Positions 3,001 through 63,900 of a stretch of DNA of 64,000 bases are shown piece after piece; position 1 is the first letter of the stretch; every line of letters begins with the position of its first letter. The stretch lies in contig CAJFCJ010000012.1 in assembly GCA_904063045.1 (NCBI GenBank), positions 1,426,001 to 1,490,000 on the forward strand, written 5' to 3'. The notes under the pieces are model-generated. The model was not told the origin of the DNA and ran no database searches. It was given only the letters and a program-made list of their open reading frames with translations. A program made the translations under genes and the position numbers. This DNA comes from Dimorphilus gyrociliatus. Its lineage: Eukaryota; Animalia; Annelida.

Positions 3001-6000
3001 ACAAAACGCTGGTGCGGTCTTTGTCGAGTGCCGCCCTTCCATACACTGATCTCATGCATCGCTGCCAAATTATATAGATATATATAAAAATACAGTTCTC
3101 TTTATAACTTTATATATACAGTTCGCGTCCCGGCAGACCGGCCAAGCGAAGCTCGGACAGCGGGAACGGCGTGGATTCGGCGTCACCGATGGAGCGTTTC
3201 AAGAAACCGAGACCAGAGCACTCCGACATCGCATTCCCCAACCATCCGCACGACGTTAACCTGCACGGTAAGTTAATTGTAACAAAATAGAACGTAATAG
3301 GTACTATAGACCAAAAGCATACACATTTAATAGTTAAACTGTACACAATTATTAATATTAACGCTGTCATTAATATTAATATTGAATAAGAATATATCTA
3401 CAGTATATATATCTATATCTTAATATCCACATATACATATGATATTAAGGATCGATAAATACCTTTTAACTGTTCGAAACATGTCATCTGTGTTCTGTTA
3501 TAAATGGACTATGGTAAACTAAAGATCGTATTACATTTGTTTAGAACATATACAGTTTAGGAGCACTAATTGTAAATGCTACCCATTTTTGGGGACGCCC
3601 GAAATTGTTTATAGTGACGCCTTCGGCCTCTTTCTATTATAAGTGAACCCAAGAGTGTCATATCATCTTCATCTACGTGATGAGTGCCTTATTGTCCTTT
3701 CGAAGCCACGCTCCACTCTCATTCGTCATATTTAGTGACTGATGTTTGCTCTTTCCTTTTGATATATATATACAATACTGTATAGTTAACTGAAAGAGAA
3801 GAGAAATATTCTACACAAGCTATAAAGTTTTTTTTGTCTTTTCTTCTTTTCTCTCTCTCTTTCTGTCTCTCGAGCTTACAGTTCGTGAGGAAGAAAAGAG
3901 GAAGAGAGAAAGTATTTTTCTCTTTTCTCTAAAGTACATACCGCTTTTACCAATAGCTCCTTTTTCGATCCTAGTAATTAAAGACTAATCATTTAATTAT
4001 CCCAACGCGACATCACGCCAGCGGCCCTGTATACTATTTCAATTATAAATTAAAAGTTGCGTTGAAAAAAATGTCTTATATTGCAATACGTTCAGGTAAA
4101 TATTAATATAATTAAATACAAAGGATTTAAATTAATTAGATAGATTTTTTTCTAAATATAATAATATTGTATTGTTAAATAGAACGAATAAACACACACA
4201 CACACACACACAACACACGAAGACACGCATGCACAGATATAAATATACAGTATATATATATATATATATATATATATACTGTATATTCATATATTTAATT
4301 ATTATATATACTATATAAATGTACTATCTGAGTTAATGGAACTACAGTTTCCTCTATATAGTTTCTTAAAGCTAGCAGACTTTCATAGATTGCACGACTT
4401 TAATTAAAGAGTCGGAAGGGTAATTGTCCAGTTCCATACTGATCAAATTGCAGTTCTTCTGTTGACTGGACAATTTCGAGTAGATTATGTTACATGGCAA
4501 TTGTTTTCGTTGCCAATGATTTACTGTTGCTTTAGCTGTTCGACTCAAGTGGGAATTGTTGCAGATAAAAAATCGCCCCTCTTCAGTAACGGCTATAATT
4601 TCCCACCGCACCTGGCTGCCGCCTCCCTACAACCGTTCATGCCGCTCGCCCATCCGGCCATGATGGCCGCCATGCATAACCTCATCCCGCCCCCGGCCTT
4701 GCCTCTACGACCTTCGTCGCCTCGACAAGAACACAACAATAATCGGGTCAAAGATGACGATGATGACGACAGTAATCATGCAAACGAAGGTGGACTAGTC
4801 GATTTGTCCATCAAGTCCCGCGATAGATCTCCCATCAGCGCTGGAGAAGAGATGAGTGACGATGAAAGGGATGGATCACCGAGCCCTCAACCGCAAGAGA
4901 CGAAGAAAAACGCCTCCGGCTTTATTGGAATCGGTGGCATTTGCGGTGGTGGCAGTAGCGGAGGAGCGGGTAGCGGATCTTTTTCCCAAACGAGAGGACG
5001 CCTTGGTGTTGTACCACATCCAGGACTTTTGCCCGACCATGACGTACCAACGAACCCCGTTGAAACTATCTTAATGAACATACATGGAATGCTTAAAGTG
5101 GCAGCCGAAACTACTCGTCACAACGAACGACAGAACAACTTCGAAAAAGGTTCGTAATTAGGCCGTAATTAGCGCTGAACGTCATTAGAACAATATGGGA
5201 AATACGAGTAGAGTAAAGATGAAAAAGGAAAAAGGAATAAGCTAATGATGTCGCGAGCAATTAGCGACTAGTCACATCACGTAAAATAGACAGAAGCGAC
5301 AATCGATAAAGCAAATCATTTCTCAACGCGTCTATATGTGTGTATATATATATATAAACGTTCAGACAAACAACGCCTTCTTTTCATATGGCTACGTACT
5401 CATGTTTAGACCGCGACCCCTTTTATAGGTTCGCCCTTAATAAAAGCGAAGCATCGTGTTCATCGCTGCTCTTTACAGAGTAAATAGGTGATTTTGTTTG
5501 TACACCGCGTGCAGCCCTTCCTTTTCTCTGTTCGAGCGTTTTTTGTCGGAGGAGCTTTGTGCAAAATACACCGATAACGATCGCTTTGCATATGGCGCGA
5601 TAATGACATTCTCTTCTATATTTTACTCGTCTCATTGTATTCTCTTATTTACATTGTATGCTATATAGTTACGTATTTAATCATATAGGTGAATTACGGG
5701 TGGCTCTAAGTAGAGAAAGAGAGCTTCGAGGCCAATTAGAAAACGAATTAGCGTCAGAGAAGAGGGCCAATGCTGAATTAAGAAAGAAGTTGAACAAGGA
5801 GAAAGACTTGCGTAAACAATTCGAGGAGCAAGCAAATGCGGTTAACGTCGATAAAACGGCGGATGAACGGTGCGAATCGACCGGTATGTATATTGCGTAT
5901 TCATCGCTTTTTTTTCTTTTTTGTCCTTCAAATGTATACTTAATTCCATTTTCATTCTCTTCTTATTCATTCGCTAATGTTATACAGGTTCAATGGAATC

Positions 6001-9452: not shown

Positions 9453-12288
9453 ATGGACACAGAAGTGCAAAAGGTCTTGGAAAGGACAAAAGCTGCTGTA
9501 AGTGGGGTTATAAGTTAAAAAAGTGATTCTCATAGCATGGTCTTATCAATTTTTTTTAATCATATCATTTCCCCGAAACTTGCATCAGCCTTTAAATATC
9601 GAAATAATATTTCCCTAACTGAGTCATTTTCCCTTATGAGATGAAAAAAACATTTTTTTTAAAAACTTATTTTTATTAAATTGAGACCAAATTCTTTCAT
9701 TAAAGCTAATGTCGTCAATGACGTTGAAATTTCTTTTTATATCATAAAACAGATTAGCGTAAGAATACAGTAATTTCAATAATAGAGAATATATATTCCA
9801 GATTATCTATGGATAATGAACTTGCTCAATTCATTTTCTTATGTCAAAATATGTTTGCAACTCAAATACAAGCAATATACCACACACGATTTCGAATTTC
9901 ATTTAATAATAGAGTTGTGAATTATTTTATCTCAACTAGATTATATACTACATGTCATATTTCAAAATATTTCATCAGTTTCTAATTCTCTATAAATATT
10001 TTCAGGAGCAGGAAATCAACCATTTGGAATCCGAACTGAAAGCAATGCAACAGAATAGTTCAAACGATGAAAATGATCCAGCAATAGAGGCTTTGAGGAC
10101 AGAGAATTCAAAGTTGAAGTATCAAAGGATGCATCTACAGAGGGTAAAAATCAATTATAATTTTCTTACTAAGATTTTATTGAAAATTTACTGAATTTTT
10201 TATGCAGGCGATAAACGAACAGAGTAAAAACTCTGGCAAAAATATGACTAGTCTGATAAAAATATTGAAAAACTTCTTTCAAGAGTCATTAAACTCTAGC
10301 TATCCTCAGCTATCTCATTGCACTGTAGATGTAACACCATCAACTAAAATAACATTTGGTGATTACCAGTGTAATAGTGCTATGGCTCTCAGTGGGGTTT
10401 GTATACAAATTATTTTAAATAGTTTTTTAATTAAAATTCTTTCCTCAATTAGGAAATGAAAAAGTTAGGAGCAAAAACAGCTCCAAGAGAGATAGCACAG
10501 AATCTTGTAGCTAAGCTTCCCCTATCAAGCTCTGAAGTTATTGAAAAAGTAATTTTCGATTCATTTTGTTATATAAATAGAAAGAGTAATTTGCTTTTTC
10601 TTTTCATCTTCTTAATTTAGACTGAAATTGCTGGACCTGGATTTATAAATATTCACTTGAAAAATTCTTTTGTTTTAAGTGAATTAACTGCTTTAATTAC
10701 TAAGGGTGTTCGACCACCCTACGTTGGTCCAACCAAGCGTGTTATTGTCGATATGTCATCACCAAATATCGCTAAGGAAATGCACGTTGGTCATCTCAGG
10801 TATGACTCTTGAATTCTTGCTCTAAAAACTTATTGGCAATTGAATAATAGTTATTTTTTTTCATTAGATCAACTATCATTGGCGATAGCATTTCAAGGTT
10901 GTGCTCTTACGTTGGTCACGATGTATTAAAATTGAATCATTTAGGCGATTGGGGAACTCAATTCGGAATGCTTATAACTCATCTTATTGAGAAATTTCCG
11001 AACTATAAAACTGAAATGCCACCAATTTCAGATTTAATGGAATTTTACAGAGTTAGTTTAATTTTCAAATTGAAATTCGCTCTATATAATTTCTAAATGT
11101 TTCCAGGAATCGAAAAAGCGCTTTGACAGTGATGAAGAATTTAAGAAGACTGCTTATCAGAATGTTGTACGCTTACAAGCTAAAGAGGAGGATTATTACA
11201 AAGCTTGGCTTCTAATATGTCATGAAAGTTTTAAAGCTTTTAATAAAATTTACAAATATTTAGACGTGCAAAATTTAGTAAATAGAGGAGAAAGCTTTTA
11301 TCAAGATCTTATGAAAGATACAGTAGAAATGTTGGATCGAAATGGAGTAACAGAAATAGACGAAGGACGTAAAATTGCTTGGCCAACCGGAGAGAAAGGT
11401 CAGGGTGTTCCTCTAACTCTTGTTAAATCGGATGGAGGTTTTACCTATGATACATCTGATATGGCTGCGCTCCGCCATCGACTCTTCGAGGAGAAAGCAG
11501 ATTGGATTCTGTATTGTGTTGATCAAGGCCAAAGCACTCATTTCGATGCCATATACCAAACCGCTCAAACTGCCGGATGGTATGATCCAAAAGAGAAAAG
11601 AGTGGAACACGTTGGTTTCGGTCTGGTGCTGGGTGATGATAAGAAAAAATTTAAAACTCGTTCTGGCGATACAGTTCGACTACAAGAATTATTAGATGAA
11701 GGCTTAATGCGTTCCGAAAAGAAGCTGAAGGAAAACAATCGAGATTCGGTTCTAACTCCCGAGGAGTTCAAGGCAGCGAAGGAGGCAACGGCATTCGGCT
11801 GTATTAAATATGCCGATTTATCCCATGTTCGAACTCACGATTACGTTTTCAGCTTTGATAGAATGCTGGATGATAAAGGCAATACGGCAATTTATCTATT
11901 GTATGCCTACACTCGTATCCGATCAATCGTTAAGAATACAAATCTATCAAAGGAAGAAATTGAAAAGCTCGCAGCCAATGCCACTGCCGAGAGTTTACCC
12001 ATTGACCATCCGAGAGAAATACGACTTGCAAAATTTTTGCTTAAATGGCCAGAAGTTATAGAAACCGTATACAAAACTCTAATGGTGAATTCATTATGCG
12101 AGTTTCTATACGAATTAGCTGGTGTTTTCACTGAATTCTACGAAAAATGCTACGTTGTTGAAAAAGACCGAACAACAGGAGAGATCGTCAAGGTCAATAC
12201 ACACCGTCTATTGTTGTGCGAAGCGACAGCTAATGTGATGAGAGCCGGATTTGACATCCTCGGACTACAAGCTATTGATAAAATGTAA
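9453..12288 (+). CDS. RARS1: Cytoplasmic arginyl-tRNA synthetase with N-terminal leucine-zipper extension
   Basis: Contains [34 protein letters not shown] (HIGH motif), [22 protein letters not shown] and [20 protein letters not shown] at 9453; long last exon ends TAA at 12288. Confidence 0.97.
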
Positions 12289-18722: not shown

Positions 18723-20003
18723 CTACAGTTTACGATTGAATGCACGATATCTCATTCTCTTTCTTCCTCTTTTAGAGATTATTTCATTCACCCAACGATT
18801 ATTTTCTCCGTCACATTCTATATTTCTTCTTGCTCTACATCCAAGATAGTTTCCCCTATAGTCGACTGATGATCTTGCTCTTCTTCTTGGAGTTTTACAT
18901 TCGCCCAGAAGATGTGGCATATTTTTCTGCGTTGACCACGAGAGCGAACATCCGCAATGAAGTGGGTTTTGTCTCAAATCCATATCAATAAGTTTAGACA
19001 GATTTTTAACGATGCACTGATCAATGGAAGTTATAAGATTTCCGCTAACTTGCAAATGTTTCAAATTATTCAAGTATTTAAATACACTGGGACGCAATTC
19101 TTCAATTTTAGAATCACGTATGTCCAACCATTCAACATTCTTCGCTCCAATAAACATTTCCGGATGAAGGGTTCTGAGGTTAGTATGAGCCAGGTGTAAT
19201 TCGACCATTGATTTCAGCGACTTCAAAGCCCCATTAACAATTAAAACAAGTGGATTTTTAGATAGATCTAGATGTTCCAGAGATCTCAACCCTACCAGAT
19301 TTTTACGAAAAAGAGCAGGTAAACGATTATTACTCAAATCTAAATCTTTTAAATATCTTAGACGCACAAAAACTGATGGTTGTAAATCTCTCAAATCGTT
19401 ATGAGAGAGTGACAGGAAAGAAAGTTTTCTTGTTGGATAGAACGCTCTCGAATCAAGCCACCAAATAAAGTTAGAATCTAACCTTAGTTCTTTTAAACTC
19501 ATTAAACCTTTCAATTTGTCCCACCTTAAAGATGTCAGAAAATTATTCGATAGATCCAGATGTGTTATCTGTGATGAACCTTTGAATATGCCATTAGGTA
19601 GTGTCCTCAGAATGTTGTGCGACAAATCAATACTCTTTAGTTTCCTCAGAGACCGAAATACACCCGCCGGTAAAATTTGAATTAAACTGTTTTTCAATGA
19701 GAGATGTTGAAGACTCTGTCGAACACCCTTAAAACTTTTCCTTGTTAGGGTTAGGGGAACTTGATTATCAATAATTCGTAATTCTTTTATACTGGAATTT
19801 TTGAGAGAAGTTTCCGGTAGGCGTTGGACTTGATTGATACTTAAGTCGACAAGTAAATAGGATCCATTAAGGATAGGAGAACGATAAAGATTAGCAGAAG
19901 AACAATTTAAAATTGATTCCGTTACACATTCACATCGAAAAGGACAAAACTCAGCAAATATCCCAAAAAAAAAATTAAAGAGAACGCAGATACGTATGTA
20001 CAT
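18723..20003 (-). CDS. Secreted leucine-rich-repeat protein (signal peptide, LRRNT, about 12 LRRs, LRRCT, basic tail, no TM segment)
   Basis: 426-aa single-exon ORF with hydrophobic N-terminus, CPFRCEC, repeated LxxLxLSxN units and NPLHCGC. Confidence 0.85.
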   Translation of the reverse strand: MYIRICVLFNFFFGIFAEFCPFRCECVTESILNCSSANLYRSPILNGSYLLVDLSINQVQRLPETSLKNSSIKELRIIDNQVPLTLTRKSFKGVRQSLQHLSLKNSLIQILPAGVFRSLRKLKSIDLSHNILRTLPNGIFKGSSQITHLDLSNNFLTSLRWDKLKGLMSLKELRLDSNFIWWLDSRAFYPTRKLSFLSLSHNDLRDLQPSVFVRLRYLKDLDLSNNRLPALFRKNLVGLRSLEHLDLSKNPLVLIVNGALKSLKSMVELHLAHTNLRTLHPEMFIGAKNVEWLDIRDSKIEELRPSVFKYLNNLKHLQVSGNLITSIDQCIVKNLSKLIDMDLRQNPLHCGCSLSWSTQKNMPHLLGECKTPRRRARSSVDYRGNYLGCRARRNIECDGENNRWVNEIISKRGRKRMRYRAFNRKL

Positions 20004-21157: not shown

Positions 21158-24100
21158 TTAAATAATAGAAAAGACTTTCTTTAATTCCACAATTAATACC
21201 CAATCACTTTTTTGCATTTCTTCTCGGAAACATTCTTTAAGTGCATCAATAGAATCACGTGATATCTAAAATAGATGTAAAGTATCTTTTTAGTCTATTT
21301 TGACAAACATGTTAAAGGGACTTACTTTAGACACAAGCATATCTTCTGCATCAAAATGACGCCCATACAATCGAGGAGCAACACCAGGAAGAGGTTCTAT
21401 CTTTATACAGACTTCGTCTCCTTTCTTCGCAGAATCAACGTTAGAATGGGATTTTTCTATGCTTACCACTCTTCCGAGTTCGCAAAATTCTTTAGTGGGA
21501 ACACACAGAGGAGTACCAACTTTCAGGGTGCCCGCTTCAATGATTACACCCATAACAATAGGATCTCTCTTGTTAAATATATATTGTGGTAATATTTTTA
21601 GCTTGCTTGGGAATACAACTACATCTTTTAGTTCTTCTCTTCGTTTCTTTTTCAAATCATCAAGATACTTATTAAAAGAATCATACAAGTGATATATTAT
21701 GTCAGCGGTGAAAATTTTTACACCAACAGAATCCGCTAACTCCTGAGCTTCTCTTTCAACCTTAACGTCAAAAGCAAGTATACATGCCCACTGAGGATCA
21801 TGTTCAAGCATTGTTGATGCTTTTACGACATCTCTCTTATGTAGAGGTCCAATATTTATACCAGCATACGGAATTTTCGAATCTCTGAAAAATTTTAGCA
21901 AAGCCTCCATGGAGCCTAGAGTTGAGGCTTGAACGTAAACACCTCGCTCCGATAGTTTTATTTCACTTAAAACATCTTGTAGCATCTTTGATAAATGAGA
22001 TTTATAATATTCGATCTCATCCGGATTTTTTGTTGAATATAGTGGTAAACCGGCCAAGGCTTTGTCTAGTTCTTTGGCAATAATTTTTACGCCTTGAGCA
22101 GCATTAACTATTTTATGCCTTTCATAACTGCTTTTAACGCGAAGTTCCTTCAGAGGTTGTGGCATCAGTAGGCCACGTATTTGGGTGACTATGGGTCCAT
22201 CTGACCCAGCTAAAATTATACAATCTCCTTCTTTCAATTGACCTTGAAGCAAAATTACATCTAGGGTTGTGCCCAACCCGTGTTGTTCTTTAACTTCCAT
22301 AACTGAAGCACATAATTCCTCAGATACAGCCAATTCTTTGGGTATCTGATTTTGTCCTAATTCACATATTGAAGCCAATAAATTTCCCATTCCATCCCCG
22401 CTGTGAGCGCTGGTTGGTACAACAGAAATGTATTCTTCAGGATTTTTATTTTCATGAAAGAGAGCAACGTTTAAACCTTGCTCCATCAGCTGAACATAAG
22501 AATGATTCCATCTTTCCTCAAATTCATGTTTTGTATGTGTTTGCATTTTTGCTAAAGTGTTAACCACATCTGTATTAGGATTTGGTCTCCAGTCATACAA
22601 ACGATCAATTTTGTTTAGAGCTATCACGAACGGAGTTTTTTTCTTTTTTAATAACTCAATACTCTCAATTGTTTGTGGTTCAAGGCCATGCATTATATCA
22701 ACAACTAAAACTGCAACATCACATAAACTGCTTCCTCTATCTCTTAAGTTTGAAAACGATTCGTGGCCAGGTGTATCTATGATTAGTAAGCCAGGTAGCT
22801 TCAGTTCCTGCTTTGTAAAGTTCTTACACATTTTAGTTTTATCTAAAATAGCTGCCTTTGGTACGTTTGTTGCACCAATCTGTTGGGTGATACCACCAGC
22901 TTCTCCCAATTGAACATTAGTTCTACGAAGTTTATCAAGTATTTTTGTTTTGCCAGTGTCTACGTGGCCTATATAAATAATAAATTATATGTTATTCAGT
23001 TTTGATAATTAAAATATTATAAATTTTACCAACCTAAAACGCACACAACTGGAGCACGTAATACATCAGTCTTCCTTTTGTCTTCATAGTAAAAATGCTT
23101 TCTCTTTACTCTCTCCTTGCCTCTCTCTATTGATGTCATACCCTTCATAGCATCATCTTCCCAATCTTCATCAGAGCTCTCTTCGTCCTCTTCGGAACTC
23201 TCGTCTGAAGATTCTTCGGAAGACTCTTGTCGATCCACAGACTTCTGCTCAACAATTTTCACTGATTTTTTATTAACTTTCTCAGAAACTGGAGGTGTCT
23301 TTTCGTCGTCTGAGGACTCAGCCCAATCCTCTTTAACATCTTCATTTTCATCAATTTTATCAGAGGAAGGAATTTCGGGAGATTTTTCTTTCTCCTCTGC
23401 AGGTGTTTTGTCCTTTGGCTCTTCAACAACAGTAACAGGAATAGCGGGAAGTTTTTCTTCTGTAGGAGTTTGCTGCGGCTTCTTCTTTTTAGTGTAGATT
23501 GGCTTTTTCCTTTTGATAGGTTCCTCTTCTCGATTTTCTTTTTCCTTTCCAGTTATACCAAATGATGCCAGGGCTCTCTCCGAAACCTTGCTTTGCCTGT
23601 TTGCTTTCTGCCTTTCTCTCTTCAATTTATCCTTCATTTTTTGTTTCTCTTTCTTTTCAGCAGCTTTTTTGTCTTGTTCTTCTTTAAGTCTCAAAGCTTC
23701 TTCTAGCCTTTTCTCTGCCTCTTCAGCTTCCTTTCTAAGCCGTTCCTCTTCTTGCCTCTTTTTTTCCTGTAGCTCTAAAATAGCTTTTACTTGGGCACTT
23801 TTCTTCTTCTTTGGCTCTTCTTCTTTCTTTTCTTCCTTTTTTTTCTTATCTTTCTTCTTTTTTTTACTTTTTTCTTTATCTTCCGCTTCTTCTGGTATGG
23901 GTTCTTCTGCAGGTTTAGGTTCATCTTGTTTTTTTGCTTGCTGTTCCTTCTCTTTTTTCTGTCGTTCCTTCTTTTCCCTCTTCTTTCTTGCCTTTTCTTC
24001 TTCTTTAGCCTCTACTTCAGCGCTAGGTTCCGCACTTTTGATCCCCATCTCAGCTAAAATGGCATCCAGATCATCTTCATCATCTTTTTCTTTTTCTTTC

Positions 24101-43602: not shown

Positions 43603-46055
43603 TTAATAAGGTAGCAATTTCATCCATTCAAAATTAAACTCCTCCCCTTTTTCAACTTCTACATTTCTATTTATATCTGCTTTCTCAAGTAAGCACTTTG
43701 GTAACATAACGCAACGAAATTCGTGAATTATTCTCTCAAAACGCAAGGGAGGTAAAATAACTTTGTGATCTGCATGCATTGCTTTAGTAACGTAAACTTG
43801 ATCATGTTTGCGAATAAGATATAAATTTGAAATTCCAGATGTACATTTTAAAGTTTCCTCGATTTTTTCTACCGTGAACGTCCATGTTAGGTCCAGAAGG
43901 TTGCAGTTGTAGACATTAAACGTTGTAAAATTCTCAGACTATCATGTAAAAATTTCAAAATTGCCAAATAGGTCATATGTTAAAGGCTTGTCCTTTTGCT
44001 AACCAAAAGGAATTATTTATGGCACTTCAATTGCTTACTGAATAGACACTATAGCGTGATTTAAAAACAATTTAGTAATATTAGCAATTTTGAAATTTTT
44101 ACCGAGTTTATCACTAAAGTTATTCTAAAGTAAGTTTGAGAAAGATTCATATAAACTTTTAAAGTGGTTTTGGCAAGTGATAGAAGACAAATTGTGCCTT
44201 GTCCATTTGGCTTATGATTACTACAAGCGCATTTTGGATAAGGAATTTTTATAAAATTGAATGGATATACATTTTTCCTCAAAATCATATAGCCCTTCTC
44301 TTCTTGGTACCAATTTTCTGACAGTACTATATGGCTTGAGGGTCCACCAACAAAAATTAATTTTCCCTCGATTATTGGTAGATTTTCAATAGTATATACA
44401 GGCCAAGGTTTCCATATAAATTTTGATTTGACCTCCTTTAATTTTACAAGTCTCATTTCTTGACCATTTCTTTGCAAGCAGATATACTTTCCTTCGCATA
44501 TACCATAAGTTACATTTTTCCAATTATTATGTTTTGGGGGGCTTACTGTCTCTTTTGGTTTTTCTTGGTCACGAATGTTTACTGCAAATAATTGAGACCC
44601 CGTCTTTTTCCGCACAAGCATTTTGCCTGATTTGAGGGCACCAATGGGAAACAAGTCGTCTTGAGAGCATTTTAGAGGAAAACTAAACCAATTATTTAAA
44701 GTCGGAGAGTAAAACATTATTGAAATTGAATTAAGATTGATGAATACAAGCATTTCTTCCATTGTTTCATTGGAAGAAGTATGTAAGATTTCCAGATGCA
44801 ACCTCCTGTTTAGTAATTCGGAAGCGTGGGGTAAGTTAGACGTATCTATACCGTATGAATCAGCTAAAATATGTAATAATATATCGTAATCTTCTTGACT
44901 CCCTACGCCCTTCAACCATTTCATAACTGCTTCTACAGTGAAATTACTGCAGCTTTGAAATACTTCTTGTTGAATCAACCATAAAATGCCCTCAAACGGG
45001 AGACATACAATCTGCTTTAAGAGATTCTCACTGTAAGATAAATTGGATCATTAGACAGGAAAATTATAAGAATCATTTAATGAAATTTTATCTAGATTAG
45101 TTTCGAATTAAATGTTATAGAAGTAATACTGTTAAATTTTTATAAAAATCATTTAAATTTTAGAAGAATTAAATTGACCTGAAGAGAAGGGTTTCTAAAG
45201 CCGTAGAAGTAGCTATTTTCAATTCCTCTAATTCAAATACATCAGCCAAGAAAGCCATACTTAGACTATTTTTAACGGTTAGAAAGTCCAGCAATAAATA
45301 TTCACATTCTTTAACAATCTCTTCAACTACAAGCATTCTAGCTATTGTAACTAGGGGGATAACATTTTCCAAATCAACTTCTATTGTTCCGCTATAAAAG
45401 AAGTATAATATTTTACGAAAAACTTCGAAGTTCTTCAGAGAGCTAGATAAGTCGATAGTTTTTAGATTTGTCTCATTAAAATTGGTAGTAAACATAGCAT
45501 TAAAGTAGGGGGACGCAGCCGCCAATATTATTTTATGAGCTGAAACTTTTTGATAGTCCAGAGAAAATGTAATATCACAGAGAATAGATTGTTCAAAAAA
45601 TTCACAGAGCTTTTCATTTAGAGGACTTAAACTCTCCTTCTTATCTATAGTTCTTGTCGGTTGCCTATCAGTACTTTCCGGTTCAATACTCTGCACAAAT
45701 TGCAATTTAACTTTTAATAAATATTTGGAAAGCTATTTTAAATTATTTTGGTAGAAATCAAATGTTTAAGCTTAAGCGAAAAGTCACATATTAACTGCAA
45801 AGTAAAAAATAAATTTAGCCGATATTGAAAACATTTATTAGCTTAATCTGTATGAAGTAACTTTCTGTGTTTTGATTATTAGAAATAGCTAACATGTGCT
45901 CTTAAGTTATTAAAATTGGAAGTGATACTAGCACATGTTGTGAATGTTATTTACCACATTTTCGATTCGTTCTGCCTTACTTTGATGAAAGCCAGCGTTG
46001 CTAATCGATTTTCTTTTTCTTCCCTTAAAATTTTATCGAAATTTTCGGTCGTCAT
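43603..46055 (-). CDS. BTB/POZ-BACK domain protein with divergent C-terminal region
   Basis: Exon 1 46055-45981 (MTTENFDK...AFIK), then CDITFSLDYQKVSAHKIILAAASPYFNAMFTTNFNE (BTB); long C-terminal exons; stop at 43603-43605. Confidence 0.8.
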
Positions 46056-46295
46056 CCTCGATTTTGCTTTAAAACCAAATTTCCATAAGAACACTATATC
46101 TTTGGAACCTAAAAGTTCTTAGGAAATCTTCAACCAATGAGGAATACACGTTTGCGCACGCATTAAAACTGGTAATAGTAATGCTGTATTTCACCAATAG
46201 ATGTGTCTTATAATATCGCAAAATTTTCATTTATTGCGGAAAATCTGGAAATTCTATATGATTTATTTAGTAAATTGAAATTATTAACAAAACAA
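46056..46295. promoter_or_regulatory. Bidirectional promoter BTB gene/SNRNP48
   Basis: Head-to-head ATGs are 240 bp apart; NRF1-like TGCGCACGCA (46153-46162) and two CCAAT boxes. Confidence 0.55.
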
Positions 46296-47681
46296 ATGGA
46301 ACAACCTAATTATTCAACTGACATTGAGAAACATGAGCAATGGATATCACAGTTAATTTCAGATTTAAATTGGGATAGAAAGACTCTACTGGAAAAAGTA
46401 TTTAAAAATATAAATGAAAAATGCTTTTGTACTGATTTTTTGTATCATTTTCTCTCAAGGACAAATTCACTTGTTGTTCAAACGAAAAAGGGCATAGAAT
46501 GCCAGATAAAAGCCTTAAGAAACACGAAAATTATTGCCTCATTCGGGAAAAAGGTTATACAGACAGTGAAATTGTTAGTGTATCAAATAAACTATCTTGT
46601 ATTAGTGAAATTCTACTAAATTTCTTTTAAAGGACGAATTAGCATCGGCTGAATCCAAATTTGATGATTTTCAACCGCAAAGAATCCCAATAGGTTTGAG
46701 TAATAAAATTGGTAAAATACTTTACTGTTCAATTTCCTTAATTTTAGATTATACTGAAGTTATTAGGATCATAAAAGAGCATCAACCTGGTGAGTTCAAT
46801 TTATATATGATAAATTAATCATATATTAATTAATCTATGAAATTAAAAAATTATCATTTTTAGATGAAATTTGTTAACTATTGATTATTTTTGCAGTGAG
46901 AGCTGTAAATTCGTCGAAATTCGTGCTTTTGTATCCTTTGTATATACCGTTTATAATTAATTCCATTTTCTATTGACTTTTTATGATATATACTTTAAAG
47001 AAAGAAATTTGATACAATGAAAACCGATCAATCTTATATTATTTTATTATACATCATTACAGGTTTGGATATTACGTTGGGGAATATAAAACAATTCTTA
47101 AGAGTAAGTTTTTATTTTGAAGTGGATAAAAATTTGTAACTAAATTTATTAACAGCCACCTGGAAATGAAATTGACACTGCTTTGTCTCAATCCACTCAA
47201 CTCGCACTTTACGATTATTTTATGTCTTTGACAGAAAAGAACGAAACGCCTGTTCTCGAATTCAATCAAAATGATGGAAGTAAAAGTAAGATACAACTTA
47301 AATAAAACTTTCATCTAATCGCTTTGTTTTTTTTATTAGAGAAGAAAGAAAAATCAGAATTAGAAATTCTAGCTGAACTGCGAGATGCAAAGAGAAGAAG
47401 GCAGTCGTATAAAGGAAAAAGCACACATACGGGATCTAAAAATTACAGTGAAGTACGTAAATGCACTTTCCTTAAATATAACAGATATATCTGACACAAT
47501 TCAAAAATAGATCATTAGAGAAGTAATCGCAAATCAGATGGAATTAGTACAGCATGAATGGGAAGCGTCATTACCTGAAAAAGAGCATAAAACATCTAGT
47601 CGCTATTCATTCGAGAAAAAGAGAAAACATAGCAAGACTAGCGATTTCAGAAGAGATTATTATTCGAAGAGAAGAAGATAG
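46296..47681 (+). CDS. SNRNP48: U11/U12 snRNP 48-kDa protein; exons 46296-46397, 46460-46573, 46633-46693, 46748-46789, 47063-47103, 47156-47285, 47340-47452, 47511-47681
   Basis: CHHC zinc finger CSNEKGHRMPDKSLKKHENYC, then QLALYDY and ELEILAELRDAKRRRQSYKGK...YSEIIREVI (human LEILAEVRDYKRRRQSYRAK...YTEVIRDVI). All splice phases are consistent. Confidence 0.93.
46897..46949 (+). promoter_or_regulatory. 8-nt poison micro-exon (46897-46904) plus USSE-like U12 5' splice-site element (GTATCCTTT, 46932-46940) in SNRNP48 intron 4
   Basis: Sequence reads TTTTTGCAG|TGAGAGCT|GTAAAT...GTGCTTTTGTATCCTTTGTATATACC; inclusion creates a premature TAA at 47087-47089. Confidence 0.8.
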
Positions 47682-49660: not shown

Positions 49661-52600
49661 ATGTATCTCTGGTGGGAAGAGGGAGCCGTTCGTCGAAGCG
49701 ATTGTGTCGTTCATAGTGTATCATGGATGGGTCGTGTGCCAGACAGCGTTCAATCGGATGGCGAAGGATGGGAAATAGACGAGAATCAGTATTATACACA
49801 GGGCTGGTTAGCTACCGGTAATGCTAACGGCATGATTGGTGTAACATTTACTGAAACCGGCAACTCTTCCAATGCTTTTGATACACCAAATAGAACAAAT
49901 TTCAATCTCCGTGGACATAGACATGAGGTTTGTTTTAATTTTTTCATTTCAAGTTCTCAGTATCATATTTTCAATGGTATGCGACGCCTATTATGAATAT
50001 TTGAAGTCAATTTATATCAACTTGGTATAATTGAGTATGCTTGTCTTCTTCTAGTTTTTTTTTACCTAATCTTGTTTCCTTTCGCTTCGCGCTCTCATCG
50101 ATTATCCCGATACTTGGAACAGCACGAAAAAAGTGATGAGTTTAAGAGAAGTCGAGTACGAGAGCTTGATATGTATCGATTAGGCAAATTGCTAGCAGGG
50201 TCTTGGTAGAAAAAAATCGATTTTGTCAGTGCATTCGTTTCTATCTAGTCAGAGTGGGAGATAAGCGGCTTTTGGTTATGTCCATTTCACCGTTTTCCCT
50301 CCCGCATTCCAATTGTAATACCCAATTGGAAACGACCAGCATCTTCTCTCTGCATTTCATAATTACTGGTTTTGTTGTCAATACAGCTAATTTTGAAACG
50401 ATGACTTCTTTTGCTTAATTCCCTAGTCACGTCTCTACTTATAGTTTGTCAGCCGCTACTCCTTTCCCTGTGCGCTATCACTTCTGTGGTTGTTTAGAAA
50501 TACACAGGCATATATCGTTTGTCAATCCTTCTCCAATCGATTGGTAAATGCTAAATGAATGTTTTACTGAAATGACGCCGTTGGCAACTTTAGTTGGGTA
50601 CTTAAAAATAGAATTCGATTATTAGAAGTTCCTTTGTTCTGTTAGGTGGCTAAAAAAATCAGAAAAAAACGTGCTTGTAGGTTTGTTTTCCTTTCGGCTC
50701 GCTTTACAGACGGACGTTGACTGTTCTGCAAACGACCGATCTTATCGAATGAACGATGCGAAATATCGAGCGTTTGGTCGTCACTAGAATAAAAAAAGCT
50801 TATCGATCGGCTTTATCCCGTGTAAATATTAATATTTTTCCTTCCTCCTTTAGGTAACCCTCGTCCGATGGAATGAACCATTTCAGAAGCTTGCCACTTG
50901 TGATGTCACTGGCGTCATCTTTGTTTGGATACGGCATGAGGGACGTTGGTCGATTGAATTAATTAATGATCGGAGTTGTGCAGTAACTGATTTAACCTGG
51001 TCGCACGACGGCCGTATGGCTTTAATTACTTATAGGTTTGACAGAGAGCTTTATTGTGCGAACTATATTTAATTAAGATTTGCTTTTCATTTAGAGACGG
51101 CTTTGTGCTTGTTGGTAGCGTTACTGGTCAACGCTACTGGTCTAATACTCTCCCGCTGGATGGGGCGGTTATTACTTGCAGCTGTTGGAGTCCAGACGAT
51201 CAAAGAGTGTTGCTGGCGACTTCGAATGGGGTTGTTTTGGCTCTTACGGCCAGCGGAATTGCTTTGGGACAGATATCCACCTTGGGAGATGGAACAGAAA
51301 TCACACATTTATCATGGTCTTGTGAAAAATTTGTCTTGAAAGATTCTTCCAGCTCATCTGCTAGCAGTTCAGGGACTGATGTCATAAATCCACCTTCATC
51401 AAGAACTCACGTATTAGCCATTGTTTTTAAAAATGGTGCAATTCATTTAACCAAAGATCAAACTGACGCTACTTGGGCAAAAATTGTACGGACACTGTTT
51501 AGTGGAGTACAAGTTGATTGGTCACATGATGGAGAAATTCTTGCGGTAGCTGGATATACTCGTTTGGTTAATTTAGAATGCCAAAGTCAGGTTAGACTCT
51601 ATTCAAAAGAAGGTGTTTTACAAGTTTTTGTTCCTCTTCCAAATCAACCTGGCAAACCAGTTACCTGCGTATCTTGGGCACATTGTGATAGGCGGTTGCT
51701 AGTTGCAGCTGGATGTCATGTTCATACTGCTTGGGTTTTACCAGAACCACCTAAACTGCAGACATTCTGCTGTCGTTCTCTGCAAAAAAGCGTTCAACAA
51801 GAGAAAGATATTGCTAAATTACCGATTCCGGAATCACTACAAAAGAATGTTAGGGTATTTTTTTCTCCAACAATTCGAGGGTATATACCTGATGCTTGTC
51901 GAATACGTCAATTTGTTTGTACACCCCCACCGGCTGACGAACGTCTTTATTGTACAATGTTACGAGTTAATTCCACCGCTGAAGATGATGAACATTATAT
52001 GCTATATGTTGAATATATGGGTGGCTTAGTGCCGTTACTTAAGGGTAAACGTGTTTCTAAACTACGACCTGAATTTACTATTTACGATCCAAAGTCTCAA
52101 ACTAGTTCAGACGAATGCGAAGACGTATACAGCTCGCCAGCAAGGCGAAAACGATCAAAGAAAAGGAATATGGTACTTGTAAACAGCGAGGTTTTATATG
52201 ACGATAACCTACCAGAGCGTAATCGAATGGTACATATCACTTCAAATCTGTGGGGAACAAGATTTAAAATTCATGGTCTCGCACATTTTCTACCGGCTCA
52301 ATTGGCTTCCGTCACTTACAAAACATCTGTTCTACACCTTCAACCTCGCCAAATGACTATAAACTTGATAGAATTAAGTCGAGGTGACTTGAAATTTGAT
52401 TACGGGAAAAGAGATGTTAGTTGGAGTGAGAGCGATGACGAAAAAACGCCTGTCTCAACAGGACCTCTTCCACCTATTCAACCCGTTAAAGATGCACCTA
52501 TATCACCCGAACCCCCAGTGGCGCCGCCACTTCTTTTAGCACCCAACGATATCGACCCATCAGCAGTTTTGTCAATGGCTGCACATCGCCTCATGTCTAG

Positions 52601-53351
52601 CGACCTTCAATACATAGATGACGATTCGATAGAAGATTCAAACGAAGAGAAAAGGATAGTTCTAACACCGTCTTCACAAAAGAAAATTGATTTTGCTCTT
52701 GATTCGTCAAATTCTAATACACCAACCATTAATTCACGTCCACAAACACCAAATGCGACGCCTAGACGGCGAAAATTACGACATTTACTGCATTGCGGTA
52801 GTCTGGAACAATTGCAATCTCCATCTGAAGTTGGTCCAACTTCAATTTTATGTTCCGCTCCTCCATCCCTTCACGGTTCCCCTGTTAAGAGAGCCGTCGC
52901 TCGTCTAGCATCCCCACTCTTGGGCGTCAGACGGAGACATAATCGGCAAGGGGATAGTTCAGATGAAGAGGCTGGTGACTATAAGGACTTGGAATCTTGG
53001 CAAAAGGCTCGTTTACATAGGAAACTGCGACGTTCAAGGGGTCATAGTTGCTCCAGGTTACATTCCGTAGCGCCGGCGGTTGGCGGTTCTTTGCAACAGA
53101 ATCAACAGTGTCTAGTCATGCATAATAAAGCTCCGTTATGGAACGAAAATTCTCACGTATATCAATTGGATTTTGGTGGAAGGGTGACTCAGGAAAGTGC
53201 AAAAAATTTCCAAATTGAACTCCGTGGAAAGCAGGTCATGCAATTTGGACGAATTGACACAAACGCATACACCCTTGACTTCGAACGACCCTTCTCTGCC
53301 TGTCAAGCATTTGCAGTCGCCCTCGCCAACATCACTCAACGCCTGAAGTAA
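49661..53351 (+). CDS. TULP4: Tubby-related protein 4 (WD40, SOCS box, C-terminal tubby domain); exons 49661-49927, 50854-51035, 51095-53351
   Basis: Contains GWLATGN, NFNLRGH, VRWNEPFQKLATCD, RDGFVLVGSVTGQRYWS, SOCS box LQTFCCRSL, EYMGGLVPLLKGKRVSKLRPEF and HNKAPLWNENSHVYQLDFGGRVTQESAKNFQIE. Confidence 0.96.
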
Positions 53352-57903: not shown

Positions 57904-60900
57904 ATGGCAAGAAAGAAGCAGGAAGTTGCTTTACAGAACGAGATTGAATCGCAGGAAGAATGGGAAGAGGCTCTCGCCAAAGAGGGCTTAACAAGTGATA
58001 TATACTTTTCTATCAACTTAATAAATCACTTATTTTTCTAAATGATCATTTGCATCTACAGTCATAGACGTCTATCAGGAGTGGTGCGGTCCATGCAAAT
58101 CCGTTGTAGCCCTATTTAGACGTATAAAGAATGAAACTGGAGATGATTTGTTACATTTCTCAACAGTTCGTAACTTTTTTCTTAAACAATACTAGAACCT
58201 GTTCAGAGTTCATGATTTATTATAAAAATAGGCCAAATGTGATACTGTAGACGCTTTAGAGAAGTATCGAGGGAAATGTAAACCGTGCTTTCTGTTTTAT
58301 GCGGTAAGTTTATTAAGGAAAAGAAAGTCTCCAAAGAGGGAGCTACAACATCGATAACAACATAGATAAACTATCTTAACTTAGGAACTTGTTAATTTTT
58401 AGGGTGGAAGTCTAGTTAATGTTATACGAGGTACAAATGTTCCACTCTTGCAAAGGAATATTATGGAACAACGCGCGCAAGAAAGGAAAGTACTCGACGG
58501 AGAAGAAGAAAGAAAAGAGGTTTATTTTTACTTTTCGTATGTTTTTTCAATAATTTATATTTTTACCGTTAATTTTTTAGATTCGAGATCCGGAAATTGT
58601 ATATGACGAACCGGAAAGGGGCGAAGAGGACGAGGATGAGAGTGAAAAGGATGAGGAAATCGGTAAGAAATATTTTATATATATTTACATAGTAAAATTC
58701 TCTGTAAAAAAATATTATAAGAAGAAAAAAGTACCAATATCTCCATCTTGCATAAATTATATACTCTACCGATACAGATATCGTTTATCGTATGTATAAT
58801 TTATATAAAAGCAAACAAATATATTGTACCCTTTTCGATGATTGCTATAATTTCGCTTCATCACGTTTTATTACTATAAGACAAGGATAAAAAAAAAGAA
58901 AAGAATCAGATGGAAAGATAACTTTCAATTTCACTTTCTTACCTATCTAAACAAATATTTTTCTATTGTTTCCTATATGAACAAAAAAGAAGTGAAAGAC
59001 CATGACGAGCACGGCGATGAGCAAGATGTTGTTCGTCTCAATGGAGAGATTGTTTATTTCGATAGTTTTCCTCAAAAGATCAAGGAGGAAGGTATTGAAA
59101 TTAAAAAGAAAAAAGATAAAATTGAGCACCTACTTACTTTTCATTCAATCAATATTGCATTATATATAATACCAAAAGCAAACAGATGTTAATATTTTGC
59201 AAACAGAAAAATTGATCCCTTATGTTGTCATCTTCAAAGCAAACACCTCAAAAAAAAACAAACATAATAATTGCACTTCAATCTTTACGGATAAATTTTC
59301 CTCTTTCCACACCCTACCCAAACCCTGCTCACTTTTAAGAATAACAACTGTTTTATAGAGCTTATCAGCCTTCGCTTAATGGATTCCATTTACTTTTCAT
59401 ATTTTTTTTTCCTTATCATTAATTCTTTGAACGAAAATCAATGAAATTGGCGATTTTGTTTTCGAATTATATTTTACTTTAAAACCAAATTTCAAGTGAT
59501 TTTTATAATTATTACTTATAATTATTATTATTACTATTGTTACTATTATTAATATTATTATTATTATGATTATTAATTATCTTATCTGATCTAATATTAG
59601 TTTTCTTTTTGTTTCTTTTTTCGTTAATATTGAACAGAATCCATTCAAAAGGAAGTTACCGTAGCGATAATTAAACCTAATATTGTTGCTGCTGGACGGG
59701 TTAGTGAGATCATTAAAGAAATGCAGGAAGCGGGAATTGAGATACTGCAGGAGGAAGAGCGTCTTATCACAGAAGAAGAATGCAAAGAGTTCTATGAACA
59801 CAAGAAAGACGAAGTAAACGTATAATTAGAAAAGCTAATTAATATATTTATCATTAAATCTTTTTGCAGCCTTACTTTAATGATTTGGTAAAATATATGA
59901 CAGAAGGACCAAGCCATATATTAGTCATTAGCAAAGAAAATGAATCTGGAGAGGGTGTACTAGAGCAATGGCGCCACATGCTAGGACCTGCAAATGTTGA
60001 CGAGGCTAAAGAAGCGGCACCGGAGAGTCTTAGAGCTAAATATGGTGCTGATGGTTTTATGAATGCCTTACACGGTAGCGATAGCAAGGAGAGAGCTGTT
60101 CGAGAGTTAGCCTTCTTTTTCCCCAACTTCCATATTCCTACAACTAGTAGATCTGTTGGAGGAAAGCCTAAAATCCAGAGAACTATAGCTCTTATTAGAC
60201 CTGACGCTTATAATCAACGTAGAGGTTCAATCATGGATAAAATAACTGAAGCCGGCTTTAAAGTAGCCCTAAGCAAAGAAATCCAATTGTCCAAGGACCA
60301 AGCCGAAGATTTCTACAAAGAGCATAAAGAACAACCATATTACGAAGAATTAACAAATAGCATGTCAAAGGGACCTTTATTAGCCTTAGCCTTAGCCAGG
60401 GAAGATGCCGTAACTGGTTGGAGAGAGGCAATCGGTCCAACCGAAATTGATAAAGCAAAAGAAGAGGCACCAAATAGTCTCAGAGCGCAATTCTCAATTG
60501 AAGGCGTAGGAATCAATCAAATTCATGGTTCAGATAGTGTCGAGAAAGCTGAAGAGGAATTAGAATACTTTTTCCCATCGCAAAAGACCGTTGCTCTCAT
60601 TAAACCAGATGCTTATCAGACTAAGGATGAAATTATGGAAAAAATTAGGGAAGCTGGTTTTAGAATTGCCGCAAGGAAAGAAACAGAAATACCTAGGGAT
60701 CTTGCCGAGCAATTATATAAAGGTCAAGAGGGCAAAGACTTTTTCAACGATCTTGTTGATCATGTTACGAGTGGTCCTACTTTATGTTTGGTACTTAATA
60801 GAAATGACGCTGTGGAAGGATGGAGAGGACTCATGGGCCCTACAGATCCAACTGTTGCGAAGAGCGACGCTCCAAACTCAATTAGAGCCAATTTCGGTCA

Positions 60901-63900
60901 TGATATTTTAAAGAACGCTGTCCATGGAAGTTCCAACATAGATGAAGCTAATAAGGCTATTGAATTATTATTTGGTGAAATAGATGAAAGTCAGGGTAAG
61001 TTAACCTTTATATATACTTTTTAAATCAATTTTTGTTTGGCATTGGTTTGTTGGAATTGTTCTCTTACTATCTTTTCTTTAGCCATCAATTGTTCCTTTT
61101 TCTTTCAAGGTCAAATTTTTTCGATAAAATCAAAGGGGCATTTTATTTTCATATCTTTTCCCTTTATTTTTTCAACATTTCATATATCTTTTCAACTAAT
61201 CAATTCTTTCTTCTTTTATAAATCTTTACGCTTTCCTAACTGATATTAGAGCTGGATAATAATAAGATAGGATATCCTAATAGTGGAAGTCCTACAGTAG
61301 ACCATCTTAAAGATGGCGAAGAGTTAATTGGTTCGGATAACCAAATTGTAAAAAAAGAGGGAGGAAGCGAAGGAGAAGAAGAAAAAGAGGATGAAAAGAA
61401 CGAATATAATGAAGAACCCCAAAAGGATGGGGAAATGCAAAGAGTTGATAAGAGATCTAATGAGGAGCTTGAAAAAGACAAGCAATCAATTACAAGTAGG
61501 CCTAATAGTTCTCGGAGTAGAATATCTGTTAAGACATCAGGTACGAATGGTTCCAATCCACCCAGTATACGCAATAGTAGAACAAGTCTACGCAGCGTTA
61601 AGGAAGAAGATAAAATTTCCATAAAGAGTAGAACGAGTATACAAAGCGAACGAAAAGACAAATTAAAGAATGATGACAATCAATCAATTAAGAGTAGTTC
61701 AAGTAACAAAAGTAGAATTAGTCGTAAAAATGAGGATGGACGATCAATTAAGAGTCAGAAGAGTTTAAGTAGCCAACATTCAAGGGAAAGGATAACGAAA
61801 GTTGAAGAAGAAAAAGATCAAGATAGAAAATCAATAAGGAGTCATCGCAGTATTAAATCAAAGTTATCCGATAATTTAGATAATCAATCAATTAAGAGTC
61901 GAACTAGTTTAAAAAGCTCCGAATTTACAAGAAAAGGTATAAAATAAAGTAGAAGAAATGAGAATGTAAAATTTTTACACCTTAAAAATGTTGTATTAAA
62001 CTTATTCTTTATTGTCACCTTGGTAACGATAAAATAATCATACAACAGCACGAAAGCCCTTATTGTCATAGATAATTTAATATTGTTACATCTACACATA
62101 TATATTATACATTTAGAATTATGATTACTGTATTGTTGATATCTTTTTTTTAAGATTAGCATTTGCAATCTTCCCCCAATTTGTGTTTTTCTTAGTGAAA
62201 AAGCTATTAATTAGAGGTTAATTAGAGTACGAAACGGACAAGTTTAAACCTATCTTTGTTATTGCATGTTGGTCCTAGAGAAAAATAGTTTTTTTTATTA
62301 AAAAAAGAACTAAATATAGATTTCTTTTTTTAAAAAATACAACTTGCTAATCGATAGAAGATGAAACAATTGAAAAAATACAACCTGCTGAGGAACAAAA
62401 AAACAATGACGAGGATGTGGTAGATTTTAATTTGGGTACTGTACACGATGCCCTAGTTGTTGGGGAAGCAATTCTTCAAGCCACGGATGAAGGTGATAAA
62501 AGCGAGAACAAAGATGACGAGCAGTCGCAAAAAGATAGTAATGAAACTGAAAATGCTAAAAATGATCCAAACGAAGAGCAGGTAGAAGAAGAACAACAAC
62601 AAGACGAAGAAAATACGGATGACGCTGATAATCAAGATATGTCAAATTTAGATAGAGAGGAAGAGCGCGAAGAGACAGCTCAGACTATTACTGATGAAAA
62701 TCATGAAGATAATGTCTCAGATAATCGCGATGATATTCAGGAAACTAAACAAGAAGATAATGCAGATGATTATGAGAAAGATGGTTTTGATGAAAAAAGT
62801 GAACAAGAGGAAGCAGAGGAGAGTGTACGTCAAAATCAGGTAGAAAATCTAGAGCAGGTGGAGCAGAATCCAGAGTTAGAGCAAAATGAGGAAATAAAAC
62901 AGACAGATACTTTAAGCGTGCATAGTTCTTCTTCAAAGGAGGCCAAAGATAAGGATGAAAGCGATAAAGTATCAAATAAAAGTCAAAATGAACAAGATAA
63001 TGAAAGTCTTAAGCCGAATGAAAGTTATGATGAAAACGATAATGATAACGATAATGATAATGATAATGAAAACGAGAACGAGAATGAGATAGAGAATGAA
63101 AATGAAAATGAAAGTGAACATGAACATGAACAAGATGAACACAATGATGATCAAGACTATACAGACACATTAGGAGGTGATATAAAAACCACTCCCAGAT
63201 TCCTCCCCTATTTTTCTCCGAAGACGATTGCATTCCAGATTATCTCTATGTGCACTATAATTATATGTTAATTAGCTTGCATCATTAGCTTTTTAATCTA
63301 AAATTTTTTTACCCATAAAGCTATATTTTGCACATGATGTCATTTCTTATTCTTTAAAGTTAATTGAATGTTTATTTTTCAAGCTGAGGATGTTGCTGAA
63401 GAATCTAAAGAAGCCGAAGAAGACAAGCCTAAAGAGGATGATGAGGAAGCAGCAGCTGAAGAAGGAGAAAAGGCTGGCGAAGATGAGGCGGAAAATAATG
63501 CTGAAGAGGGTGAAGCGGAACAGCAAGAAGAGGCTGAAGCCGAACAAGAAGAAGAGAATGCAGAAGGTTTGTAAAATTTTGTTTCTCTCTTTTTTCCTTT
63601 AAAAGGTTTGTAGGCGAGGAATGTGAGGAATATTATTATCTATCGAATCACTCGGTCTGTCTATGTAAATATATTTCAATCATAAAATAATATGAACAGA
63701 AGAAAAGGGTGGTGAAACTGAAAAACCAAATGATGGTCAAGGTGATGAAGAGAAACAGGATGACAAAGCCGAAACCGCTGAAGACGAACAAAAGCCTGAG
63801 GAAGAAAATAAAGAAGAAGGAGGGAATGTTAGTCAAGAAGGGGAGCAAAAAACGAAAGCAGAAGAAAAAGAGGATGAGCAAGAAACTAAAGAGACAGGAG

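Follow-up and report, generated by a model that had tools for sequence, protein, structure and literature searches.

The SNRNP48 (U11-48K) gene of the annelid Dimorphilus gyrociliatus has one intron that is several times longer than the others and that contains, in this order, a U2-type 3′ splice site and a U12-type 5′ splice-site motif. Does this intron house the autoregulatory element, the USSE, that is known from the same gene of other animals? To our knowledge, the USSE is the only documented case of an snRNP of one spliceosome enhancing the other and feeding back on its own proteins. Found in SNRNP48 and RNPC3, it consists of U12-type 5′ splice sites in tandem, which bind U11 and are not used as donors, and through exon-definition contacts it switches on a U2-type 3′ splice site upstream (PMC5473595, PMC8329584). 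The output in SNRNP48 is a poison cassette exon, subject to NMD, together with a long isoform that stays in the nucleus and has the USSE within an extended exon 5, or “E5E” (PMC5473595, PMC8329584). In RNPC3, which codes for U11/U12-65K, the element is located in the 3′ UTR, where U11 on U12 5′ splice-site-like motifs activates an upstream 3′ splice site and a nuclear-retained long isoform results (PMC5473595). The mechanism is stated to be conserved in animals and plants and to be absent in Diptera (PMC3584512). D. gyrociliatus has lost about 80% of the ancestral minor introns, mostly by deletion, and is scored as keeping some (PMC10639083).

The window (the whole 64,000-nt stretch of DNA that was analysed) contains the complete coding part of the gene (Table 1). 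Its introns measure 62, 59, 54, 273, 52, 54 and 58 nt, exactly as listed in an earlier note on this DNA, and six of them are found as GT..AG joints in a cDNA contig. Identity searches were run exon by exon, and joining was limited to exons 4 and 5, with or without pieces of the intron between them, as a check of the frame. The exon 2 peptide carries the finger pattern C-x5-H-x9-H-x3-C, and its PDB matches are the CHHC finger of human U11-48K and full-length 48K only (E 2e-4). The exon 7 peptide, which includes LEILAELRDAKRRRQSYKGK, has residues 204–239 of human 48K as its sole PDB match (E 3e-7), and the matches of the two exons to the human protein are collinear. A phmmer search with exon 7 against 1.84 billion representative proteins retrieved 49 matches; the conserved RRRQSY segment of SNRNP48 is present in all those inspected, and P0018, one of the 49, is identical to the human segment. 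Pfam searches with single SNRNP48 exons remained blank even at E 10, because the CHHC finger model is too short for the 38-aa exon, and a search of metagenome contigs with exon 8 gave no confirmed relative. Judging from the exon 2 and exon 7 peptides, which match human 48K alone in the PDB, the gene on the plus strand at 46296–47681 is the SNRNP48/U11-48K orthologue, as the earlier note had named it.

Table 1. Features of the SNRNP48 locus (positions are those of the window)
Feature	Position	Strand	Remarks
SNRNP48 (U11-48K) gene	46296–47681	+	8 coding exons, 257 codons, stop included
SNRNP48 coding exons	46296–46397, 46460–46573, 46633–46693, 46748–46789, 47063–47103, 47156–47285, 47340–47452, 47511–47681	+	frame and splice-site check; joints of cDNA contig
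SNRNP48 exon 4	46748–46789	+	phase 1 at both ends, (D)YTEVIRIIKEHQP(G)
Intron 4	46790–47062	+	273 nt; no other intron of the gene is long; productive mRNA arises when all of it is excised at once
Sub-intron, 107 nt, GT..AG	46790–46896	+	spliced out in cDNA contig
Candidate U2-type branch site TTAAC	46874–46878	+	19 nt 5′ of the alternative AG; predicted from sequence only
Alternative U2-type 3′ splice site TTATTTTTGCAG	46885–46896	+	seen in sequence; used in cDNA contig
Putative 8-nt poison micro-exon TGAGAGCT	46897–46904	+	seen in sequence; layout as in the fish-like vertebrate (L013)
Micro-exon U2-type donor GTAAAT	46905–46910	+	read through in cDNA contig
Perfect U12-type 5′ splice-site motif GTATCCTTT	46931–46939	+	26 nt after micro-exon, 34 nt after AG; unspliced in cDNA contig; U12 branch-site partner lacking in the rest of intron 4
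In-frame TGA	46974–46976	+	stop of the isoform with alternative 3′ splice site and retention; translation ends in KEHQPVRAVNSSKFVLLYPLYIPFIINSIFY before the stop
ATATACTTT, 8/9 match to U12 5′ splice site	46988–46996	+	A at +5; chance level, probably no second site
TAA	47087–47089	+	stop if the 8-nt micro-exon is included; 3 more junctions downstream

Intron 4 begins with GTGAGT directly after the end of exon 4, closes with AG at 47062 and has a G+C content of 21%; the median intron of the species is 66 nt (PMC7854359). The acceptor ending at 46896, the stretch of exactly 8 nt that follows it and the GTAAAT beginning at 46905, all of which the earlier note had reported, are present. So is the perfect U12 donor motif, although the note had placed it at 46932–46940, 27 nt past the micro-exon, and it begins and ends one position earlier. 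Computed translation also bears out that inclusion of the micro-exon shifts the frame to the TAA at 47087, ahead of three junctions. Rfam detected no RNA family in the window, be it an snRNA such as U11 or another, and at E 1 it found nothing in 46700–47150; the long intron thus hosts no known small RNA. A repeat search of intron 4 returned A+T-rich palindromes only.

The upstream acceptor within intron 4 is used in vivo, as can be seen from a 4860-nt contig of the public run X2, which matches the locus with no mismatches and lacks introns, and hence represents cDNA. Introns 1, 2, 3, 5, 6 and 7 are spliced in it exactly at the modelled GT..AG borders. Within intron 4, position 46789 is joined to 46897 and 107 nt bounded by GT..AG are skipped (the alignment table gives the joint as 46788/46896, and the cut, counted +1, is 46789/46897). 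This junction, which the earlier note had suggested looking for in RNA data, means that the proposed upstream U2-type acceptor serves as a splice site in transcripts of the gene. Downstream of it the contig is unbroken through 46897–47103, with 46897–47062 retained. Since no contig covers 46790–46896, what is retained cannot be put down simply to unspliced precursor or to DNA. The cDNA isoform matches the mammalian “extended exon 5” isoform of 48K. The joint 46904/47063 expected for the micro-exon is absent from the contigs, where an NMD target would be under-represented, and the productive joint 46789/47063 is likewise absent; contigs drop minor or rare forms and carry no information on levels.

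The same isoform accounts for the state of the public annotation. The top phmmer match, P0001, is the product annotated at the identical locus of GCA_904063045.1, the D. gyrociliatus assembly (PMC10212961). This model of 166 aa starts at an ATG at 47017–47019, inside intron 4, which opens the longest ORF of the isoform with the alternative 3′ splice site and retention. Spanning 47017–47681 (L001 3001–3665), it is without exons 1–4 and hence without the CHHC zinc finger, and is truncated owing to the retained isoform. The P0001 annotation and the X2 cDNA run may share RNA data and were not counted as independent. The truncated model could make D. gyrociliatus seem to be without the CHHC-finger part of the protein in comparative surveys.

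We compared the intron with its counterparts in other animals. In Dimorphilus it is the fourth, in phase 1, and lies between the exon that ends in “ILxxxP G” and the exon before “L(A)IYDY”; the position is the same in L012, L006 and L013. L012, from assembly GCA_000003605, is Saccoglossus kowalevskii (PMC7137802). Its exon 4 (4202–4240) has the phases and the AT.../...CCN G ends of Dimorphilus exon 4, and the phase-1 intron that follows, 3 kb long, contains GTATCCTAA (5531) and ATATCCTTG (5546), 15 nt apart and 47 nt after a strong acceptor. L013 comes from a fish-like vertebrate, and its protein aligns with human 48K over 230 residues (E 5e-71). Its phase-1 intron 4 of 3.5 kb contains ttttcag/TAACAGGG/GTGAGT (5152–5165), then GTATCCTTT (5227) and ATATCCTTT (5243), with the tandem motifs 16 nt apart and the first of them 75 nt after the micro-exon acceptor. 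A distance rule of 25–50 nt between 3′ splice site and USSE was not applied, given the 75 nt in this vertebrate. In the A+T-rich invertebrate L006 the phase-1 intron at the same position is 476 nt long and holds a single perfect ATATCCTTTT (2956). In the metagenome contig L008, the sequence covers just the final 1.8 kb of an intron 4 that is longer.

Since exon phases and end bases agree with Saccoglossus, and order and micro-exon length with L013, comparison of the sequences identifies Dimorphilus intron 4 as homologous, with the vertebrate layout in compressed form. The claim that this is the homologue of the USSE-bearing intron thus holds: the phase-1 position is common to Saccoglossus, L013 and L006, all with U12 5′ splice-site motifs. 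An SNRNP48-like gene on the metagenome contig L007 (9000–10800; JGI 3300056788) has an intron 4 that is short and free of U12 5′ splice-site motifs, so the element would be dispensable in some lineages. No intact CHHC-finger exon was recognised in L007, which may derive from a lineage that lost the switch. In Saccoglossus (L012 5546–5584) and in L006 (2956–2987) the last U12 motif is directly followed by TGTTTTTAG/T, 13 or 8 nt, and GTAAAT or GTTAAA, that is, by a micro-exon-like unit 3′ of the motif, the reverse of the order in L013 and Dimorphilus.

What the Dimorphilus intron does not have is a tandem pair of U12-type 5′ splice sites: intron 4 contains one consensus copy only. The earlier note had spoken of one perfect and one degenerate site, and of degenerate copies, GTGCTTTT and GTATATACC, flanking the perfect one. 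With agreement to the U12 consensus at just 4 of 9 positions, these copies carry no weight as evidence. Closer to it are ATACCGTTT (7/9, at 46944) and ATATACTTT (8/9), both at chance level, as 1.5 matches of 7/9 and 0.18 of 8/9 are expected per 273 nt. There is thus a single consensus site, with no second copy above chance. This speaks against a single-site reading, since the published USSE is defined by the tandem pair and reviews count both sites as part of it. We therefore file the element as a single-site variant which most likely works like a USSE, and not as a canonical member.

On balance, we consider it probable that intron 4 is an orthologous USSE autoregulatory switch reduced to one U12-type 5′ splice-site motif. 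The idea that the same switch survives here keeps its gene, its homologous intron, the AG/8 nt/GT layout and, from the cDNA, the use of the acceptor; it loses the second site. According to the model, U11, as part of the U11/U12 di-snRNP that contains 48K itself, would bind GTATCCTTT at 46931. Bound U11 would not splice, and exon-definition contacts would instead promote the U2-type acceptor (AG 46896) that lies 34 nt upstream, in a U11-dependent manner. Splicing of exon 4 to 46897 would yield unproductive RNAs in two forms. One, which corresponds to the cDNA, keeps 46897–47062 as an extended exon 5 and meets the stop at 46974. In the other, the GTAAAT at 46905 would be used, with the 8-nt exon included and the stop at 47087. 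The unproductive RNAs would be directed to NMD or nuclear retention. Full removal of the 273 nt alone is predicted to give the 257-aa protein, so that excess U11/48K would lower 48K output.

The main rival to this model is that the intron is a relic. It would be homologous to the USSE-bearing intron, with the alternative 3′ splice site used without U11, the 107-nt excision being a constitutive decoy and the lone GTATCCTTT a decaying remnant. The loss of the second U12 site fits such decay, as does the loss of about 80% of the minor introns of the species (PMC10639083). The acceptor, with a good pyrimidine tract and the TTAAC branch site, could act by itself. Moreover, D. gyrociliatus splices short introns best and intron retention rises with size (PMC7854359), and excision of 107 nt could be favoured in this way without U11. 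However, a perfect 9/9 motif in an intron of 21% G+C in a compacted genome suggests selection, and the counterpart of this intron in L006 likewise keeps one perfect motif. Besides, the loss of most of an essential mRNA to a constitutive decoy would be costly in the absence of regulation. We therefore regard decay as unlikely, though as an explanation to be taken seriously.

Much less likely is that the motif, the AG-N8-GT arrangement and the length of the intron are coincidences of A+T-rich DNA without connection to one another and that the alternative joint is splicing noise. The motif by itself is common enough. The earlier note had estimated that it would occur about twice by chance in the window, and indeed about 2.4 copies of GTATCCTT are expected and 2 are seen, while the shorter RTATCCTT is found 5 times against about 7 expected and is not enriched. 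By chance, 1.9 cases per window are expected of a YAG with a pyrimidine tract 20–80 nt 5′ of the motif; there are two, one of them elsewhere, on the minus strand at 34297. The composite of a YAG with pyrimidine tract, 8 nt, GT and RTATCCTT 20–80 nt past the AG, on the other hand, has an expectation of 0.125 per window and of about 2.7e-4 (roughly 3e-4) in the 273 sense-strand bases of intron 4. Accident would also have to account for U12 motifs in the homologous intron of three other animals and for the presence of the joint in the only assembled contig over the SNRNP48 gene.

That GTATCCTTT is a working U12-type donor, preceded by a 34-nt exon (46897–46930) and followed by a minor intron to 47062, is suggested by its perfect 5′ splice-site consensus but is highly improbable, as no TTCCTTRAY-like branch site is present in the last 60 nt of intron 4, the cDNA contig runs through the motif without a break, as the earlier note's view that it is no ordinary donor would have it, and in the known USSE such sites are unused as donors (PMC5473595, PMC8329584).

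Compared to the SNRNP48 USSE described in 2010 (PMC5473595, PMC3584512, PMC8329584), the favoured single-site switch shares the gene and the phase-1 intron, a sense-strand, unspliced U12-type 5′ splice-site motif downstream of a U2-type 3′ splice site, and unproductive isoforms with premature stops, of which the one in the cDNA corresponds to mammalian E5E. An AG/8 nt/GT unit between the 3′ splice site and the motif is likewise found in L013. In contrast, Dimorphilus has one consensus U12 site, whereas the pairs in Saccoglossus and L013 are spaced 15–16 nt from start to start. The unit is compressed: the motif follows the AG by 34 nt, where the distance is 75 nt in L013 and 47 nt in Saccoglossus, and an intron of 273 nt takes the place of one of about 3 kb. 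Outside the motifs there is no sequence similarity. The RNPC3 USSE follows the same U11 principle and differs in the gene, in its position in the 3′ UTR and in giving an extended 3′ UTR, not a frameshift. With the AS-NMD poison exons of splicing factors (SR proteins, U1-70K) the Dimorphilus element has in common a premature stop in the gene of a splicing component; their sensor, however, is a protein-binding element, whereas the one proposed here is a site for pairing with an snRNA of the other spliceosome.

Since the system and its deep conservation have already been published, the novelty is limited. New are the occurrence in an annelid whose genome is compacted, the form with a single site, the 8-nt unit shared with a vertebrate and the mis-annotated public model. 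A spiralian with a 74-Mb genome would thus offer a natural minimal switch, in which the vertebrate 8-nt layout and a decoy acceptor that is used are combined with a single U12 site, and with such a minimal version the need for the tandem arrangement can be put to the test. The putative feedback would also have outlasted massive loss of minor introns. A bolder proposal, which we find rather doubtful, is that USSE function in D. gyrociliatus, and perhaps in the L006 species, needs no more than one U12-type 5′ splice site, that the poison exon of exactly 8 nt goes back to the bilaterian ancestor, and that the unproductive form is the main steady-state SNRNP48 RNA. If true, this would contradict the view that duplication is needed for two U11/U12 di-snRNPs to stabilise each other, and the minor spliceosome would be kept on a tight leash by default in a compact genome from which about 80% of the minor introns have disappeared.

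Several minor observations were made in the course of the analysis. Three of the RTATCCTT motifs fall within 1.4 kb of one another on the minus strand (34297, 33397 and 32926), one of them with a 3′ splice-site-like sequence 49 nt upstream; a convincing U12 branch-site partner was found for 0 of the 3, and a scan of the window for U12-type introns gave no convincing pair of donor and branch site. In intron 3, a perfect U12 branch-site consensus, TTCCTTAAT, is present at 46734–46742, 5 nt before the AG, despite the U2-type donor (GTTTGA) of that intron. Such 9-mers occur 4 times in the window against 3.8 expected, a similar site is missing at the same place in Saccoglossus, and the match is probably due to chance.

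The joint of exon 4 to 46897 (46787–46903) generates CCT-GTGAGAG, which resembles a 5′ splice site and overlaps the final base of the exon, and in Saccoglossus joining of CCAG to TGAAAG (L012 4238–4240 with 5566–5571) would have the same effect. Recursive splicing through the regenerated GTGAGAG was considered as a productive route and rejected, since it removes one exon base and leads to the same frameshift.

The X2 contig continues unbroken from the 5′ end of SNRNP48 past 45800 (window 45800–46397) and about 3.3 kb further upstream. There it enters the territory of minus-strand ORFs (44061–45705), and either overlapping head-to-head transcripts or an assembly merge may be the reason. A coral metatranscriptome run contains contigs of exons 1–2 and 8 (46218–46504 and 47511–47651) that differ at a few positions (A>G and T>A); coral-associated samples hence hold a close relative or another strain of D. 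gyrociliatus. Elsewhere in the window, Pfam recognised large exons of a TULP4-like protein with WD40, SOCS and Tub domains (51054–53351, plus strand), an eIF5B-like GTPase (21290–22909, minus strand), a triple NDK-domain protein (59864–61024, plus strand), the C-terminal half of an arginyl-tRNA synthetase (11266–12288, plus strand) and an LRR protein (18723–20003, minus strand).
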